From Magallana gigas (Eukaryota): 64,000 nt of DNA. Location of the stretch: contig NC_088858.1 in NCBI RefSeq assembly GCF_963853765.1, positions 3,286,001 through 3,350,000 on the forward strand. The letters are read 5' to 3'. Numbering within the stretch: the first letter of the stretch is position 1; each line of letters begins with the position of its first letter. Made by a program: the position numbers and the translations under genes. This document shows, in pieces, positions 36,408 to 59,402 of this stretch. The notes below the pieces were generated by a model. That model was not told the DNA's origin. It saw nothing but the letters and a program-made list of their open reading frames with translations, and ran no database searches.

Positions 36408-38176
36408 GTCTAAGATTAATGTATCTTTGAAGATTTGTGGGTTTTTTGTGGAGAAAAACAGGTGCGACAAGTTGCTTTCCCGCGAATACTGTGTATGTGT
36501 TAAAACCGGAATGGTAAAGACTGTAGATTTCCGAGAAAAAAAACAGACGCAAAAAAAAAAAAAATTTAAAAAAATTATATAATAAATGTTTGAAATACTC
36601 CATTTCCGTACATACCAATATATGATGTATAATATTGTTACTTGATTGTAGCATTTATGATAACCTAATTTGCAGATAACAATATTTTTTTTTACAAAAC
36701 TGATCTCTCAGTTTTTTGGACAATGTGAAAAAATATTGAAAGTTAATATAAAGACAAAATACGAGAGGTTTATTTTTGTTAGCTTTTTAACAATTACGAC
36801 ATATTGGTCATTTTTAGACTCTTTTAATTCTAAGAGCTGTGTATAAAGATAAAGAAAATGATGGAATCTCCAAGCTGAAATAGTTTGATTTTTGAGTTTG
36901 AGTTTTACGGGGGGGGGGGGGGGGGGTTACGGGGGGGGGGGGGAGCTTCCGTAATCACAAATCGGGAGCTCAAAACTTTGACCTTATGCAAATTGGGGGT
37001 GGGGGGGGGGGGGGTCTATCACCCCCTTCTAGATCTGCACATACGGGATAGGATTTAACATGTTTTTATAAGTTTTGGTGAAGTTTTGTTTTTTGTCAAG
37101 TAAAGATTGTTAAACGGAGGTATAGGTCCGTCCATGGTAGTCTAGATCACCAAGTATACCCCTGTCCTTTACTTTTATCAATACTGCCAATGTATAAATA
37201 ATGTTTGCATAATAGTTTAATAACATGTATACTTCCATGGCATTTTCAAATTATTCTCAGTAGTAAAAATCAAAATATTTAAATTTTGTGCCCTAACAGA
37301 CACGAAATTGTGGGCGGATGGGGGGTCGAACATCTATATCACCACCCCAATTATCTGGGGAAAAAATGGTTTCTGTTGTTTATTTTTCTTGTAGATTTTT
37401 CCTTGTCTGCCTACCGATGAATTTTCAATCTCAATCACAAAAACATGGTTCTATTACAATTATTTACTACAAGATCTTGAGTTGTGCACACTTTGAAAAA
37501 TAGAATCAGAGGTCTGGGCAAATACACGAACAAATAGAGACTTCACTTGCATGTATTAAAAATGAGTGCTTTACTTCATTAAATTTGAGTTTGAATTTCA
37601 AATATACCACAGCTCCTCTTATTATGTGCAGAATATTGACTGTCTCAACAACATGCAGGCGACCAATCTCAACCGGCAGACTATCACCCTTAGGCCCAAG
37701 CCTAATTCTCGGTCTGATTTAAGTTCTTGAGAAGTCTCCAAAACTTTTTTCAACAATTCACTTTATTTCTCGATAAGAAGTAGAAAATCGATTTCGTCGG
37801 CAAGTGCCTAATTAGTTCATCCACTCTATTAATCCATTTTATTGTTAATCTGTTTAATTAAGATAATCCATTTCAACACACTCTGCAAAAAGTTGCAATT
37901 CAAACAATATGGAGATTAAAATACCCGGCATTAAAACCTCTGGTTCGGTGCATGCCGAGTTGAGTGTGTAGCGATGTTAGATTGGGCGGCTCGTTGTGTC
38001 TTGGTTTTAGGTAATCTCTTGTGATCAGTAGATGTCGACAGTCTTGTGAACAAAGACGTTTGTGCAGAAACTGTTGACAGATTGTCATAGTTGTCCTGTC
38101 GTCACACACAACTAGTGCTTGGTAACGACGACCTGAGAGAAAACGGGAAACTGCGGACCTGACAGAAGACAAGAGG

Positions 38177-41100
38177 ATGCTCAGAACGGAACTTAGCCTT
38201 CCCCCGATCTACGGGGCTACAAGGTAAGGACCACTTGCTGTTTTGTTTTTAAATTCATTTGTGGTTGTATCATATGGTTGTATCATGAGCAACAATATAA
38301 CTAGGTTTATTTACTAGTATGTGTACATGACTTAAAAGTTAATATGCAAAATAAAACACAGATTACTATAGCCATACCAGACAACACCATCGATAGCTGA
38401 AGAATATCATGCGACTGGAACTCTACTCCAGTAAACCATCGTATATCAAATTTAAGTAATCATTTAGATAATGTTAAAGATAAAGCATTCTACTTTGATA
38501 TTGTAGAATTTAAGATATTTCGAAAATGGAAAAATTGGCCACACATTGCTGTGAAATGACAGTCGTTTATGACACATACCGCAACTTTCAATATCGACCC
38601 ATTTCAAGTAAAATTTAACGAACAAGTGAAACATTACGTGTATTGGATGTCCAGAAAGATGATAATTTTAAAAGAATTTTGTACGACAGAAGTTGTAACA
38701 TTTTTATATTAGGGTTGGTCGGGTTAATGTTATTAACATAATACGTATTGATTATCAAAAGCTGATTATGACATTGGGTTAGCGTTAACTAATTCATTAT
38801 TGAGACATAAACAATTCAGTAATTATTTAGAATGACCCGAGATGCTCTTTTATCGTCTATATCGTGTTCAAGACAGGAAAGGAAGGGAATATGGGCGGTG
38901 GTAGTGGGGGGGGGGGGGGTAGCATGAAGAGACTGAGCTTCTTCGAGGTGACGAGAATATTTGTATATTATTGTTATTTTCAAGTCACAGTCTAGCCATG
39001 CGCGGATCCAGAATTTTTTCCGGGGGGAAGGGGGGGGATCCGAAGGATAATTCTGTTTGCCTGGGAGGGGGGGGGGGGGGGTCCGAGGCATATTTGCGAT
39101 AATTTTACTATGTAAATTTGATAAATTTTCATTTTCCGGGGGGGGGGGTCGGGACCCCCCTCTAGATCCTCGCATGCTAGCATTAATCTTATGTGATGTT
39201 CTAATCATGTTATGGACTCATGTATTTCGGGTTAAAGAAACGCAAAGTGAGAAGAGATTTATTTACAATATACTCCATAAACGCTTGACAACAGAGCTTG
39301 CTACATTTGGTAAATCTGTCAGCACTCTGAGGCGGGCAGTGATTTTTAAGATTGAGACAATGCTTCCGCTGACTGGAATGGTCGTCACATTAGTCGGCTT
39401 TGTCGGAGATGGTGCCCCCGTGAATGGACTTGATGGGGTTTAATCTCTGTGGGTCATCTGCAGACGTTCAACAACATTATACCATTGAGAAATGTGGGCC
39501 AGACGACGGGCGGGCATAAAACACAACAATCACATCGTCAACATGCCGCAGCCATAAATCTCCAAACATGACACAGGAATGTTTGCTCAATTTTATAACC
39601 TTTTTACAATATAATGAATCTCAAACAAGACTAAGTATAAAACTGAGCTGACGAGACTCTGTATCTCAATATAGAGAGTTACCTTTCTTTCATCTCATAT
39701 GAGGTACATGAAACGAGACTTACCAGGTACCAAATTTGAGCGGATCTATATATAAAGGTTGGAGGGGGTGGGGTGGATGGTTCGAAAAATTCAAACTTAT
39801 TGAATTCCCACGGTAAAATTGCAGATAATAGGCTCAGACCCCCACCATCCTCCCCCCTAGCAAACCCAGTTATCCCACGGACCCCATCCGGAAATTTCTT
39901 TGATCCTCGCATGAATACTAAATACTAAAAAGTATATTTTTCGAACTTGACTGCAAATATTTTGCAAAGATTTACATGCTCATGGTAACGTTATGCATTT
40001 TCTCAAAATGTTTTTTTAAAGTTTTCTTCAGCTTTTAAAAAATGTAATATTTGATTGATCTTTATCTAATAAAATATGATTTCATGCACTACAGAAAAAC
40101 CGATATATTAATGATTATCTTACCTAAATCATTCTGGTAATTTTTTTTCCTCAGAAAAACTATATTTTATTTTCTTCTTTTTTTGAAAGGGGGGGGGGGG
40201 TAAAAAAACAAAATGAGGTCAACATCAGATGGATTTGGTTTGGCAACCTATGAAATATTCGCTCTGAAAATCAAGTGTTACCTAAGAGATACATAATCAA
40301 TCGATTATTTTTTACAAGTATTATCCAATATAAGTCGTTTCATAACTACTGCAGGGTGTATGGACAATATCTGTGTAATTATCAATTGCTGAGCATGTTT
40401 CCTCATTGTGTTTAAACGGCTAGTTAGACATGGGCATTATATATTATATTGACATCCACTGAGCACTTCTCTTTTATTTTTTTTCAAAGAAATTCCACTT
40501 TGCTCTTACAACTTTTGACAAAACCGAATCATGATCTTACTAGTTTAAATCAATTTGTCTGCGCATAATTTATACAAGTATATATACCTTTGCACCTTAA
40601 ACTGTTTATAACCGCCTTTAAGAGGGCTCGGTGGTATCTAGACTATATTAATCTCCTTGAAATAAAGAGCGGTGTATAAAACAATGTAGGAAAATATTTA
40701 CACTTAAAAGCTATACTATTTTGAGGTTTTTCTTTACTCAGTCTGACACAGGTAATGACTTAAATACAGCTTTTTCTGCGCTAGATCTGATGACAATTTG
40801 TTGAGCATCCATGCAGCCTCCCTAACACATTATCTAGCAGTGGTCAGTTTGTCAACTGACAACGTTTAATCAAATAGAAACCTATAATGAAGTATGTCTT
40901 ATGTTATTCTGAGGCTAACTGTACAATGGATTATTTGGGGATAATTTGAAACTTCACTACATTCGGTAGAGAGCATGGACTGAAAAGACAAGACATCCAT
41001 TTAGGTTGTAATAACCTTCCATATATGGAAGAACTGGCTGTTCCTTGTATTGCGACGTCATGGTCCACAATAAAGATTTTCTACGTATTGTTAATCAATT

Positions 41101-44100
41101 TATAAGAATTTTCGAACAGAGATCCAGAAAGAGATGTTAATAGAACCAGCAAAATGCTATCTACTGTAATTCTTACTGTATACTAGTATTGCTAATAAGG
41201 AATCAATCATTTTATTACCAGTAACCTGTCAATCTGATTGATTAACCTTTTGTGATGGGTTATGTAATTTTTTCTGCAATGCTCCCTACCTTCATACTCA
41301 CATGAACCACCACCAAAGAAAGTATTTCACAGTTTAGTAAGGCTTTTTAAAGTTAAACTTGATTGTTACGGAGTTGGATTCTTATTTTGAATTTAGGTTC
41401 GTAAGCTTCCTTTTTATTAACGTTTTTTGAAATTTTAGATCGGAACATACACATGGGATAAAACAGATTATCTACAATTTCCAATTGCCCCCAATATATC
41501 TTATTTATATTTTAAACAGGTGCACATGGTTTAAACCTACTTGGAACGAACCCCTTTCAATTTCCAAGCACAAAGTAAACTTCTCAATTAAACCAGATAA
41601 AAACTTTTAAAATATTTCAATCCATCTTACTTACACAATGTGTACTGTAACAGTTAATCATATAATTAAGGTGGACTTTAAAAGCTATAGGACCGTCGTT
41701 AATTCAAACATTTAAATTTCTCCCGTCAAACGTGTAAGCTTGGAACAGTTTTCTTTTCACTGCATTGTAAATCAGCTCTTTACCCCGCTGAGGCTTACGG
41801 AGCGGTTTAAAGTCTTTGACGTATTTGCTCTGTGTATAATCGTTGGAATTGCAGTCCTTTGGAGCAGCCGTGTACCCATTGTGGATTACTTCTGTTCTAT
41901 TGATATCTGAATCTATTACATTTCCGGTCTGTATCCAGGGTAACCGCTTACCCTTCCCTGACCGGAAGAGACACAAACTGATTCAGACCTTTTCTCCGTG
42001 TTTGATGTCATTCATTGAGTGAAAGTGTTTCTTCTCTAATGATCATTTGACACATTTGTTCAAAATGCCCGGACATAGAAGACCATATACTTCTTTAGAG
42101 GGATATGACGTGTAAGTATCTCGATAGTGTTTCTATGGCAACTTATTTCTATAGTTAAACGGAAGGTTTAATCTTAAAAGAATACTGTTGCTTATTTTAA
42201 AAGAAATCTTAAAATTCACTCGACTTACAGCGAAAATACAGACTGTTTTGACTTGTCACATACTAGTAATTGACAAATTATTTATTAAATTGCTTATATT
42301 TATTAGTTTTCTTTCATAAATATTCAAGTCTGAGCAATTTTTATGTCAAGGACACACATTAGTAGACGAATGATCAGGGACTTAATCTGATATGATCGCC
42401 AGATAGATATCTTTTTAAATATTGAAATTAATATCTATATTGATCACTGGGCTGCTTGAGTCTGCGCTATTTAAACTTCTTAAAATTCAGAGGTTCGTGT
42501 TCTAATTACTCCATGATAAAACCGCGGCCTTCGTTCAGGGGCAAGTTTTAACCCAACATTTATAATGAAGAATTCAGTCTTACAGATTGATTTTTTGATC
42601 TTTAAGAACTCAATCTTTTCACTTCTTTAGGAAACCTAAGGCTCAGACATGACTGGTGTGTTAAAGGTTCATTCATTGTGTCTTAGGCACTTCCACGGTT
42701 GCGTAATAGATTACATACACTTATTGCGCTAATACTCTTATTCCATTCATTCTGTGGAAACAGAATGTGTCCAAATACTGAAACAATCTTTTAAAATTAT
42801 CTCGTTTTCAATTTTATCTAATTGATTAATTGAATATTTCCCGATTGATTTAGGAGCTGCCAGCCAGGCGAGCGAATGGCGTGCGATAGGGCTTATTCAC
42901 GCCAATGCATTATGCCGATATTCGCATTGAAACGCGCGGGAGACAAAGATGTATTTCAATACCTTATCCTATAGACAGGTATACGGACATTGATACTTGA
43001 AATAGAATTCAACTCCGAGGCGAGTGTCATTGATTTGTAGAAGGAATTTAACACCTAAGTCAATATTGCACCTTCCATTGTTCGATGGTACCGATTCCTG
43101 AGTTGCCAACATCCGATATTCTCATTGATATACCGGTATATCTGCTGGTTATACTTTAAGATACTCAGAATCATCTCAAATTTGATTGTTTTGTGAACAA
43201 TGTAAACAGTATTGGTCAGTTGTACGATAGTTTTTTTCCTCTTAAGCAGGTAGCATCGTTTTCCAATTGGCTTGTATTTATTTATTTTACTCTATATTAA
43301 TATCAGAAAAAGTACATTTAAAAAGAAAGTTAGGGTGTGTGTGTGTGGGTGTGGGGGGGGGGGGGGGGGGGGGTAGGACAGGCAGTCTTTTGCTAAACAT
43401 AGTCACATTAAAGTTTTTGGCATAAATCTAATCGGTCCACTGTAAAGTCTGTCTTTTGGAAGCGACACCTAAATTGAGTTCAGTTCATTCTTACCTCAAT
43501 TTTCTCCATACACTGTATAACACTATACACTGTATAACACTATACACTGTATAACACTATACACTGTATAACACTATACACTGTATAACACTATACACTG
43601 TATAACACTATACACTGTATAACAATTACTGGAGCTTTGATATAACGTAAAATATTATAAGGATTTAATGGATTGGAAAGTGGCGCTGGTATTACCCCGT
43701 CCTTGGTATTATTTAGGTTTGTAAATAAATTAAAAAAATCTTTTATGTAGCTCTATTCTGTTGATTTAATTGAATTTATATATTGCTCAATTCTGCGAAG
43801 GCTTACAAACCCTTGAATAAGGCAAATAAGTGGCAGTTTTCAATTTTTAGAGAGAGATAACGTCATTCTAAATCATGTGATGCCAAAGGATTCACCAGTT
43901 TAAAAACAGCGGCAATTCCTTAAGTTTATCATCAGACGATAAACACTGTTTTTGATATAGTTAAGACAACTTTTTCACCCAGAAAAAACAGTCAAAACAA
44001 TGATTAATGACAACAAATTATTCCACGCTTTGTGTAAATAATGGTTCTATTTAATGACAAATGTCCTTTGGTTGACTGATTGTCAATCTGTTTAGATGAC

Positions 44101-47100
44101 AGTTCTGTATAGGTCTTACTTTCATGTTTATAAAATACCAATTTATAATGGGCCCAAGGTTTGGTTCTTTTTGATAAAGAAATACACAAAAATATTAATT
44201 GTATTGAAAATTACCATGCCTTGAATGATGGTTAATTTGATCTTACAATGGTTATGAAAAAACCCACATTGATTTAGAGCTTTGATGCTTGTCCTGTCAT
44301 ATTTAATGCAATTTTGTGGCAAAAGCATGCCTGGGAAACATTAAGATAATGAGTATAAAAATAGTTGAAAATGCTCTCTGTAGAACCATGCAACTTTCTG
44401 CATAAGAAACACATTAATAACTGCTGTTTAGTTTACTCAAAAGAATACCAGGTAACACGAATTGTAGAACCATTGTTCAGATAAGAATTACTAGTACTTG
44501 TCCAGTTTACGTTCTAGCTCTAAACATTAGGGTTTTTTCTCCGTAGTTGTTTCTCTTTTCAGTGACTTAAGGTTTGCATGTAAGATTGCCATAAATATAG
44601 AGAAGATCTCCAAACTTCAGGAAAATCCACTGAACAGTCGCTGTAACATTACCTGTGCACTACCTCTTTAGTAGACGGGTAGACAAGTCTTTGAAATAAA
44701 TGCGTAGTTTCCCTGGAGAAAAAAGGAAATATGTTGAATTATTTATTTGTTGTGAATACACAACAGATATCTAACTACACACTGTTAAGACTTGTCCAAG
44801 TTTTTGTCAAGTTTCAGTCGAACTAGTATCATGACGTTTTTTGTGGGTGCCCCAGAAAAATAGACAATTTCACAAAATCTGTGGTAATGCAGCGACCTGA
44901 ACGACACGGCACGCCCAGAAACGTCGTCTGGCTGGACACGTCTAATCTGGACATCGTGCTCCGCAGACGCCGGACGCCGCGTCACTTCAGTGGCAGGTGC
45001 GTGTCCGAGTCAGTGGAACGTTTATGTCCGAGTCAGTGGTTTCTGAGGTCAAAGGGCGGTTTATATCAGTGTCCGAGGTCATGAATAGGTCCGGTAGAAG
45101 TGGAAAAAAAATTGTCAGTGTCAAAAAGCAGGGCTTTTTTCGAGTCATTGGTATCTGAGGTTTGTGTTAGTGGGTCAAAGGAATGTCAGATTCATAAGAA
45201 TGTTTATGTCAGTGGCCGAGGTCAAAGAAACGTTTGGTTAAGTGTGAGAGGAAGGTTTGTTTCAAAGCCAACGGAAGATTTATGTTTCTTATTTGTGAAT
45301 GAGTTCTTGACTGTGGTTGAGTTTCGCTAGGAATGAGTTGGATATGTATGTCGAGTTTAAACATCTAACGTATGTAAATGTATATATGTACGTATATAAC
45401 GTGGCTTTACTTTTCCTACTTGAGCGTCTGTTTGTCTGTTCAACAGGTACCCCTCCGATGTGTACCAGACCAATGATTATGACGATGGGATGATGTATCC
45501 CCCCGCGAATGAAGGACCCTACTCTGGTCGATACACCCCTATGAAGGAGGGTCGGGGAACTCCCCTCAGAAGGTCAAACACAGTGGTGCTGGGGTCAAGG
45601 CCATCCTCAAGGATAAATCTAGGAACACAGGTAAGGCTACTCACAGGTATTGTGTACTACATTCGCTCAGACAAGGCTTCTCACAGGTACTTGTGTACTA
45701 CATTCGCTCAGACAATTTCCTTACCTCTATTCTTTCTATAAGTGTATTGATTACAATGTATATCAACAAATTCGAGTAGAATATTCCCTTTATTGTTCAT
45801 CAGTAGAATATGTCAATAATCTTGTAAACTTGGTAAAACATTTTTGAAGGATACATTTATTTTAATGTGTAAATTATTTTATATCATTGTGCTTTCACGG
45901 GACAATTTAGGATAACGTTCAGAGGGTAAGTTGAAAAGTAACAACAAAATATAGATCAAACAGGAAATGATAGCATATCATCTAATGACATCATACAATG
46001 TGGTATTATTAGAAGTATACCACATGGCATCATAATGGTATACCACTTCAAACACTTTGCAATTTATGTACAGCAAATGAGAGGAAAGCGATATTTAAAC
46101 TTACAAAGAATTAAAGGCATTCAACCACAAAAAAAAAGTGAAAGTGAAAAATGACTTTTTTAAAAACCTCTTGGTAATCAATATAAAATGTTGCTTCTCA
46201 TGAAACATTATTTGCAGTAAAGGTTTGCTTTAAAAGTCTTAACCATTGCATGCAGTTGACATGTTGACATAAACTGTAGCTTAACTTTATCGTGTGTGAT
46301 CTTGTTTCTTTGTTTACTTTAGGTATATTACTATTAATCTAATGATCACGAGGCAATTTGCATGCATTAAAATAAAGGTCTTGAAATAACATTCCTCATT
46401 CTTTAAGAAGCGTTTCTTCCTTTACAAGGCCGTACACTAGCGTAAGAAATCTTTATATGCTGACTGTTAGTAAAGTATGGCCCCAAAAAGACACGGGCCA
46501 TTTTATCGATATGATAATTAGATCTTTAATCTGTTTTATTGATTGTGTTGAATTATTTGTGCAGTACGGGGACTACCTACGGCCGGTAAACAGTCTATGT
46601 AGCACCACCAACAGATGCCTTACCATCCAAGGGCACCTGCCAACGCTCGCTATCAAACAATCTAAACGTCTTATCGTATTTGATCAAAATTAAAAATTAA
46701 GCAACGCTGCACTTTTAAGTTAAAGGTCTCTGGAAACTTGTAAGGCAACTGTTGGTGTAGGTTCGTTTGTATGACGAACGGAAGGTGGCGGATCGTGTAC
46801 TAAGCTTAGGTCGAGAGAAAACTTGTAGAAATTGGAACGTTTGTAAATAGGCTAGAAGCGATGGATGGGAGTGTTGCCTTAAATCAAAATCTAACAGTTG
46901 TCATGTATGTAACGTGTATATTAAAATTATATACATGTATATGTATTACAGACTAATTCTTTACTTAAAATCTTCTAACTGAATGATACTTCATGTATTA
47001 ATAATGGAAATGGTCAACATATTTAAATCAATGTAGTGGTATGAAATGTTATGTATGAATAGGATGTGTTTTAAAAGAAAATGAAATCAAGAAAGAAAAG

Positions 47101-59025: not shown

Positions 59026-59402
59026 GCCGGTATTTGAACCCGTCTGACCATCACATATGTCATACTAGCACTGGCTAGTGGGTAGACGAGCCTTTTGCTC
59101 AATCGGTAGAGACTAGGTGTGCTGGATTTTTATGCCAGAGGACCTGATGTCAAAACTCAGCAGAGGTAATAAGTGTCTCTGTTACAATAAAGTACCTGGT
59201 ACCAGGGCATTTTAAATTCACATGCAGACCAAGAGTATTTATTTGTATATCTAAACATACCAAACTTGTTTACTTGGGATGGTAAGGATGTGAAAAAAAG
59301 GAATATAAGAGACAAGTAAAGTGGTGACATGTCATCTCTCATCAGAGATTGAAACTAGAGAGATAGCATTCTTTTGATTCCATCCACAGATATTGGTGAA
59401 GC

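Follow-up and report, generated by a model that had tools for sequence, protein, structure and literature searches.

Alternative first coding exons joined to one shared acceptor in an uncharacterized oyster gene that varies at both ends

Our initial question was how many different starts a single oyster gene places on one protein body, and how the choice among them could be made. The window analyzed here, a 64,000-nucleotide (nt) stretch of Magallana gigas contig NC_088858.1 (positions 3,286,001 to 3,350,000 of the forward strand; all coordinates below count from its first letter), had been read in a preliminary description, made from the letters alone, as containing four ATG-initiated mini-exons that are spliced to one acceptor at 45447. 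We find that this part of the window holds one plus-strand protein-coding gene, spanning ~38.1-51.5 kb, which is LOC105346164 of M. gigas and LOC128177211 of Crassostrea angulata; both bear the name 'uncharacterized protein'. The gene has three first coding exons (E1a, E1b, and E1c) that exclude one another, carry an ATG each, and end in phase 2; with high probability all three are joined directly to the one acceptor at 45447, most likely each from a promoter of its own. The gene is variable at both of its ends, of which the preliminary description had caught the 5' half only.

RNA, isoform, and conservation evidence for the first exons

We mapped three polyA raw-read runs of the same species (X20, X21, and X22) and an oyster metatranscriptome assembly (X1) over positions 39700-45699. 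The constant exon 2, which begins at the shared acceptor, is covered at a depth of 3-12 in the raw-read runs and of 376 in the X1 contigs. A GT..AG joint leading from 42111, the end of E1b, to 45447 is present in one read of X20, in nine reads with seven starts in X21, and in one read of X22. Further reads halt just before 45447 and carry there 30 letters that are identical to window positions 38192-38221, the end of E1a, and that are unique in the window; the final AG of E1a coincides with the AG of the intron preceding 45447. Such E1a letters are attached to 45447 in four reads of X20, in eight reads of X21, and in one X1 contig at a depth of 365. Taken together with the joint from 42111, these reads thus place both E1a and E1b on 45447 in the same samples. 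The preliminary description had made its model depend on more than a single exon ever being spliced to this acceptor, and two are joined there. All reads have their first mate on the minus strand, fitting plus-strand RNA in a usual stranded library. A Logan transcript contig of 1174 nt (L003) is fully spliced and runs from E1b through exon 2 to 47192 and on to 51086 and beyond. Coverage of E1b rises at ~41850-41900 and an X1 contig terminates in adapter at 41849/41850, which suggests that transcription of E1b starts at ~41850.

To this we can add the public isoforms of the gene. The 61 residues encoded by exon 2 returned five strong matches among 1.8 billion representative proteins, one of which is a 283-residue protein from Ostrea edulis with an N-terminus matching that encoded by E1c. 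A search with this O. edulis protein led to entries named 'uncharacterized protein' in M. gigas (LOC105346164), Crassostrea virginica (LOC111128803), and O. edulis (LOC125650960), and also matched proteins from Saccostrea, Pinctada, Mytilus, scallops, and Mya. Members of the C. angulata gene fall inside the M. gigas protein cluster, and every such gene has many numbered isoforms. Our inspection covered 17 of the 63 members of this cluster, and 16 of 16 M. gigas and C. angulata isoform proteins could be rebuilt exactly from the window via canonical GT..AG introns. Three kinds of N-terminus occur among the isoforms listed in the clusters. The E1a type (MLRTELSLPPIYGATR; MHRTEL... in C. virginica) is the N-terminus of isoforms P0029, P0031, P0034, and P0037-40, the E1b type (MPGHRRPYTSLEGYDV; MSRLRRPYTSLDGYDV in C. 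virginica and MPGERRPYTSLDGYDV in O. edulis) is the start of P0012 and P0030, and the E1c type, 37 residues of which the final 26 are identical across four oyster genera, is the N-terminus of P0010, P0032, P0033, P0035, P0036, P0041, and P0042. The proteins therefore share a common body that carries one of three unrelated starts of 16, 16, or 37 residues.

We compared the window with the corresponding genomic loci of C. virginica (L001) and O. edulis (L002). C. virginica has the exons in the same order, E1a-E1b-E1c-E2; O. edulis has E1b-E1c-E2, with no E1a detected in the 10 kb upstream. Synonymous and non-synonymous codon changes number 12 and 2 in E1c compared with C. virginica (13 and 1 compared with O. 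edulis), 4 and 1 in E1a at the syntenic place in C. virginica, and 5 and 4 in E1b compared with C. virginica (4 and 2 compared with O. edulis). The changes are mostly synonymous, which points to purifying selection on all three exons, and the GT donors of E1a, E1b, and E1c are all retained in the compared oysters. Conserved blocks of 150-450 nt lie upstream of each first exon.

The three starts differ in their distribution. Mytilus-like, venerid, myid, unionid, and protobranch (Solemya) sequences all include an E1b-type start (MPG..R.YTSY). E1b, which thus occurs across bivalves from Solemya to Mya, is therefore the ancestral start. The E1c-type N-terminus is present in the orthologues of C. 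virginica, O. edulis, and Saccostrea; it is common to oysters and possibly extends to further pteriomorphs. E1a is seen in Crassostrea and Magallana only. Two N-termini are also found on the homologous junction in Mytilus (MGRGKNRMQRLMETMKWSR versus MPGQIRRPYTSY...), in scallops (MQHSGKD... versus MPGSRSG...), and in venerid clams (MDKRVKFKKS in Ruditapes versus MPTEMPGRFYTSY... in Mercenaria). Alternative first exons at this junction therefore recur across the class.

Two single-letter differences were noted in the RNA, with reads showing G at 42085 and 45603, where the window has A. The G at 42085 is seen in all X20 and X21 reads and in L003 and is a synonymous CCA to CCG change within E1b. 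Both are most simply explained as strain polymorphisms rather than editing.

Table 1. Exons of the gene in the window (a slash marks an exon boundary; UTR, untranslated region)
Feature	Position	Strand	Details
E1a, alternative first coding exon	38177-38223	+	16-residue N-terminus, MLRTELSLPPIYGAT+R; donor AAG/GTAAGG
E1b, alternative first exon	41850-42111	+	5' UTR from ~41850-41900; coding 42065-42111 (MPGHRRPYTSLEGYD+V); donor CGT/GTAAGT
Candidate 3, rejected as coding first exon	42905-42978	+	weak donor GTATAC
E1c, alternative first coding exon	44887-44996	+	37-residue basic N-terminus; donor CAG/GTGCGT
Exon 2, constant; acceptor common to three first exons	45447-45630	+	entered at phase 2, left at phase 0
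Cassette microexon, 15 nt	45911-45925	+	in some public isoforms, not in others; canonical AG/GT flanks
Cassette microexon, 21 nt (YGDYLRP)	46565-46585	+	present or absent among isoforms; canonical splice sites
Three constant core exons	47192-47376, 47739-47830, 47942-48127	+	16 rebuilt isoforms; transcript L003
Alternative 3' coding exon	48613-48638	+	exact isoform reconstruction
Alternative 3' coding exons, paired	48993-49072 then 51086-51106	+	exact isoform reconstruction
Alternative 3' coding exon	49268-49320	+	2012 model only
Alternative 3' coding exon	49499-49548	+	exact isoform reconstruction
Alternative 3' coding exon	50057-50091	+	exact isoform reconstruction
Alternative 3' coding exon	50245-50330	+	exact isoform reconstruction
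Alternative 3' coding exon	51086-51138	+	exact isoform reconstruction; used by L003

The number of starts and the choice among them

The four mini-exons were originally picked out by a pattern that we could confirm: each begins with ATG, maintains an open frame, has a length that leaves a remainder of 2 when divided by 3, is followed by GT, and joins 45447 in frame (the acceptor reads ...TTCAACAG/G, that is ...CAACAG/G, and exon 2 ends in CAG/GTAAGG). Their placement in GC-richer patches is roughly right, with exon GC contents of 0.55, 0.43, 0.41, and 0.63 for E1a, E1b, candidate 3, and E1c, respectively, versus 0.36 for the region. The pattern shows no statistical excess in 38000-45446. Open stretches that start with ATG, measure 40-200 nt, and reach a GT in phase 2 number 33-35 in this interval. 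Seven of these have a passable donor, compared with ~8 in shuffles of the same interval and an average of 11.5 in other 7.4-kb blocks of the window, and ATG..GT stretches in phases 0 and 1 are equally frequent. Taken by itself, the pattern is therefore no proof. Each of the four stretches occurs only once in the 564-Mb genome and thus none is a repeat fragment, which rules out a repeat origin of the four exons.

Given these counts, all four mini-exons might be chance ATG..GT matches, with the true 5' end of the gene located elsewhere. We attach practically no weight to this explanation, as the junction reads, the spliced contig, the exact public isoforms, and the purifying selection on E1a, E1b, and E1c contradict it and the RNA joints refute it outright for E1a and E1b; it holds for candidate 3 only. 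Candidate 3 is absent from all 16 mapped isoforms, no listed isoform begins with it, and no joint from 42978 to 45447 is found at the reporting threshold in X20, X21, X22, or X1. In C. virginica and O. edulis its ATG is replaced, its frame is interrupted by TAG codons, and its GT donor, weak already in M. gigas, is gone. A first exon that is real but rare, tissue-restricted, or specific to Magallana would bring the number of starts to four. In its favor, X20 and X21 have reads at low depth (1.4-2.6) over 42700-43099, the inspection extended to 17 of the 63 cluster members, and a neighboring block at ~42990-43090 shows conservation in two further oysters. That block lies downstream of the proposed donor, however, outside the proposed coding part, and with isoforms, junctions, and conservation all missing we regard a fourth start as very improbable. 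Candidate 3 is a chance ATG..GT match beside a conserved non-coding block. The proposal of alternative first exons on one body thus stands for E1a, E1b, and E1c, on RNA junctions, isoform proteins, and conservation among oysters, and falls for 42905-42978; the starts number three, not four.

For these three exons, each first exon would most likely have its own promoter, such that the N-terminus would depend on where transcription begins, with microexon inclusion and last-exon choice adding further variety. The conserved blocks upstream of the first exons are compatible with separate promoters. Alternatively, transcription could start from a single upstream promoter, with E1a, E1b, and E1c being mutually exclusive internal exons picked by splicing. 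Such an arrangement would agree with an AG at 41853-41854, near the onset of E1b coverage, and with the RNA reads over 39700-45699, among which no read-start pile-ups are listed and from which no transcription start has been mapped. Yet E1a joins 45447 directly, with neither E1b nor E1c in between, none of the reported joints enters E1b from its 5' side, and the X1 contig at 41849/41850 ends in adapter and not in an upstream exon. In addition, each first exon has a conserved upstream block of its own, and the O. edulis locus yielded no E1a upstream of E1b. We consider a single promoter unlikely and favor three separately started first exons. The lack of mapped starts counts against this model, as do several further points. 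E1a lies outside the mapped interval and was recovered via loose read ends, and its 5' end is thus unseen. The junction from 44996 to 45447 has no reads at the reporting threshold in the three raw-read runs, where depth over E1c is 0.4-0.8, and E1c therefore rests on public predicted isoforms and conservation. The public isoforms are themselves automatic predictions, as are the combinations of N- and C-termini that they list.

The protein and its relation to known systems

The gene product, ~250-300 residues long, is predicted to be disordered for the most part and contains short motifs that are invariant. An AlphaFold model built with 31 homologues has a mean predicted local distance difference test (pLDDT) value of 50 and a predicted template modeling (pTM) score of 0.18; it contains a single short confident helix at about residues 153-166 of P0010 and no ordered structure across the first-exon peptides. 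The protein matched no family in Pfam, a profile search of the PDB returned no relative, and a search of the ESM Atlas by features gave sub-threshold leads only (0.78 and 0.75). Among the named matches of two profile searches, both constrained in sensitivity by their word index and length window, none came from outside bivalves. Within the reach of these searches every named match is a bivalve protein, supporting the suggestion in the preliminary description that the protein is lineage-restricted.

Invariant positions cluster in the motifs ..DP.T.QYY.R.., ..R.GRAGG.WRH.., ..G.F.EGTVK..DN.., and ..GFKYWYQE..KP.D. The targeting role that the preliminary description had proposed for the first-exon peptides is hypothetical; those encoded by E1a, E1b, and E1c contain no hydrophobic stretch, none is signal-peptide-like in composition, and that of E1c has a net charge of +6. 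Pairwise scores of the three peptides are at or below shuffle means, and there is no meaningful similarity at the DNA level even when 300 nt upstream are included. Ser/Thr sites rich in basic residues, such as RRSNT and RRRRTP, suggest phosphorylation, and the protein is probably a motif-based regulatory or adaptor protein that would act via short linear motifs and phosphorylation sites. Several of the end modules date back to the bivalve ancestor: lineages from Solemya or Mytilus through to oysters share the MPG..YTSY start as well as the ..RFRLKAR.. and ..WHPVF ends. One could go further and envisage a bivalve-specific disordered adaptor in which 3 N-terminal modules, 4 microexon states, and at least 6 C-terminal modules re-wire localization or partners, giving >70 possible isoforms whose ends, not a folded domain, carry specificity; we find this proposal speculative and rather doubtful.

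In animals, few sources of isoform diversity are as common as alternative first exons. The oyster gene resembles animal alternative-first-exon genes in general, as mutually exclusive 5' exons (E1a and E1b by RNA, E1c via seven public isoforms) reach one second exon and each brings its own start codon, and with it a different N-terminus. Nothing essential differs, with separate promoters being putative in the oyster gene. The preliminary description had drawn analogies with UGT1A, protocadherins, and plectin. Plectin (PLEC) provides the better fit: in both genes short, unrelated first coding exons are spliced to a common exon 2 and a constant body, whereas the oyster gene has only three starts, encodes a protein unrelated to plakins, and has at least six C-terminal variants. 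N-termini of plectin direct localization. Clustered protocadherins and UGT1A likewise join variable 5' exons to shared constant exons. Their variable exons are large, paralogous tandem duplicates encoding the main functional domain. In contrast, the oyster variable exons measure 47-110 nt, have no detectable mutual similarity, and encode 16, 16, and 37 residues. Because they are neither paralogous nor domain-encoding, the locus is not a cluster of the protocadherin/UGT1A type, and these two analogies fail on their defining features.

Nor is the system undescribed, as had been proposed. Exactly these N-termini are found in existing RefSeq and UniProt models of M. gigas, C. angulata, C. virginica, and O. 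edulis. Between them the records carry all three N-termini together with both microexons and the alternative C-termini, and one of the isoforms appears in a 2012 model (K1RH71_MAGGI). The feature is therefore already known, while the gene family itself is uncharacterized: a literature search returned no paper naming LOC105346164 or K1RH71, and nothing relevant was found on alternative first exons in oyster. The architecture is real and represents ordinary, already annotated use of alternative first exons. Its mechanistic importance is little and its descriptive value modest. Three real first exons were recovered from raw sequence read without tools, and the analysis documents an unstudied, bivalve-wide disordered family whose two ends are unusually rich in variants, with modules at the N- and C-termini that have been conserved for hundreds of millions of years.

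Remaining exons, introns, and neighboring genes

Downstream of exon 2, the 15-nt and 21-nt microexons are included or skipped independently of one another among public isoforms. Reads leaving 45630 run into the 21-nt microexon and then into 47192 onward (agreement is 0.76 in X21; some reads differ). The core exons at 47192-48127 hold the motifs that are invariant across bivalves. At the 3' end, positions 48613-51138 encode at least six C-termini, all entered from 48127, which is more variety than is found at the 5' end. These 3' coding blocks are conserved in C. virginica and O. edulis, and the C-terminal types ..RFRLKAR..G.GY/W, ..DETLWDSLV..WHPVF, and ..YSAKYSFGA.. are conserved across bivalves. 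The 3' UTR of L003 extends to ~51509.

Two conserved non-coding blocks are located in the introns between the first exons. The block at 42990-43090, between E1b and E1c, shares ~77% identity with C. virginica and ~72% with O. edulis, with long invariant runs; RNA depth is low here (1.4-2.6 in X20 and X21). A second, single-copy block at 39420-39600, between E1a and E1b, is 74-84% identical at the syntenic place in C. virginica, contains no open frame, and was not detected in O. edulis. The two blocks may regulate the choice of start, and the one at 42990-43090 is a candidate regulatory element for first-exon choice. Folding energies of both blocks are no better than those of shuffles (z between -1.25 and +0.24), and that at 42990-43090 shows no signal of RNA structure (z = -1.25 and -0.53).

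The intron between E1a and E1b also contains a high-copy interspersed repeat of ~180 nt (38997-39177) with >2000 candidate matches in the genome, 40 scored copies of which are 81-91% identical and lie on many chromosomes; weaker repeats are found at 39786-39918 and 41257-41336. Further downstream, a perfect intronic tandem repeat at 43508-43624 consists of 6.9 copies of a 17-nt unit (100% matches). Tandem duplications directly follow two donors, that of E1c (44987-45039, 23-nt unit, 2.3 copies) and that of exon 2 (45633-45715, 41-nt unit, 2 copies), and both place GT-containing copies near the splice site.

An Rfam scan of the window matched only two tRNA genes on the minus strand within 58722-59026 (58722-58794 and 58954-59026; 38.6 and 41.6 bits, respectively), away from the conserved intronic blocks. 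The gene is flanked upstream by a large WD40-repeat gene (2000-25500, plus strand), and a gene for an Sm-like (Sm D2-type) small nuclear ribonucleoprotein lies at 55990-57750 on the minus strand.

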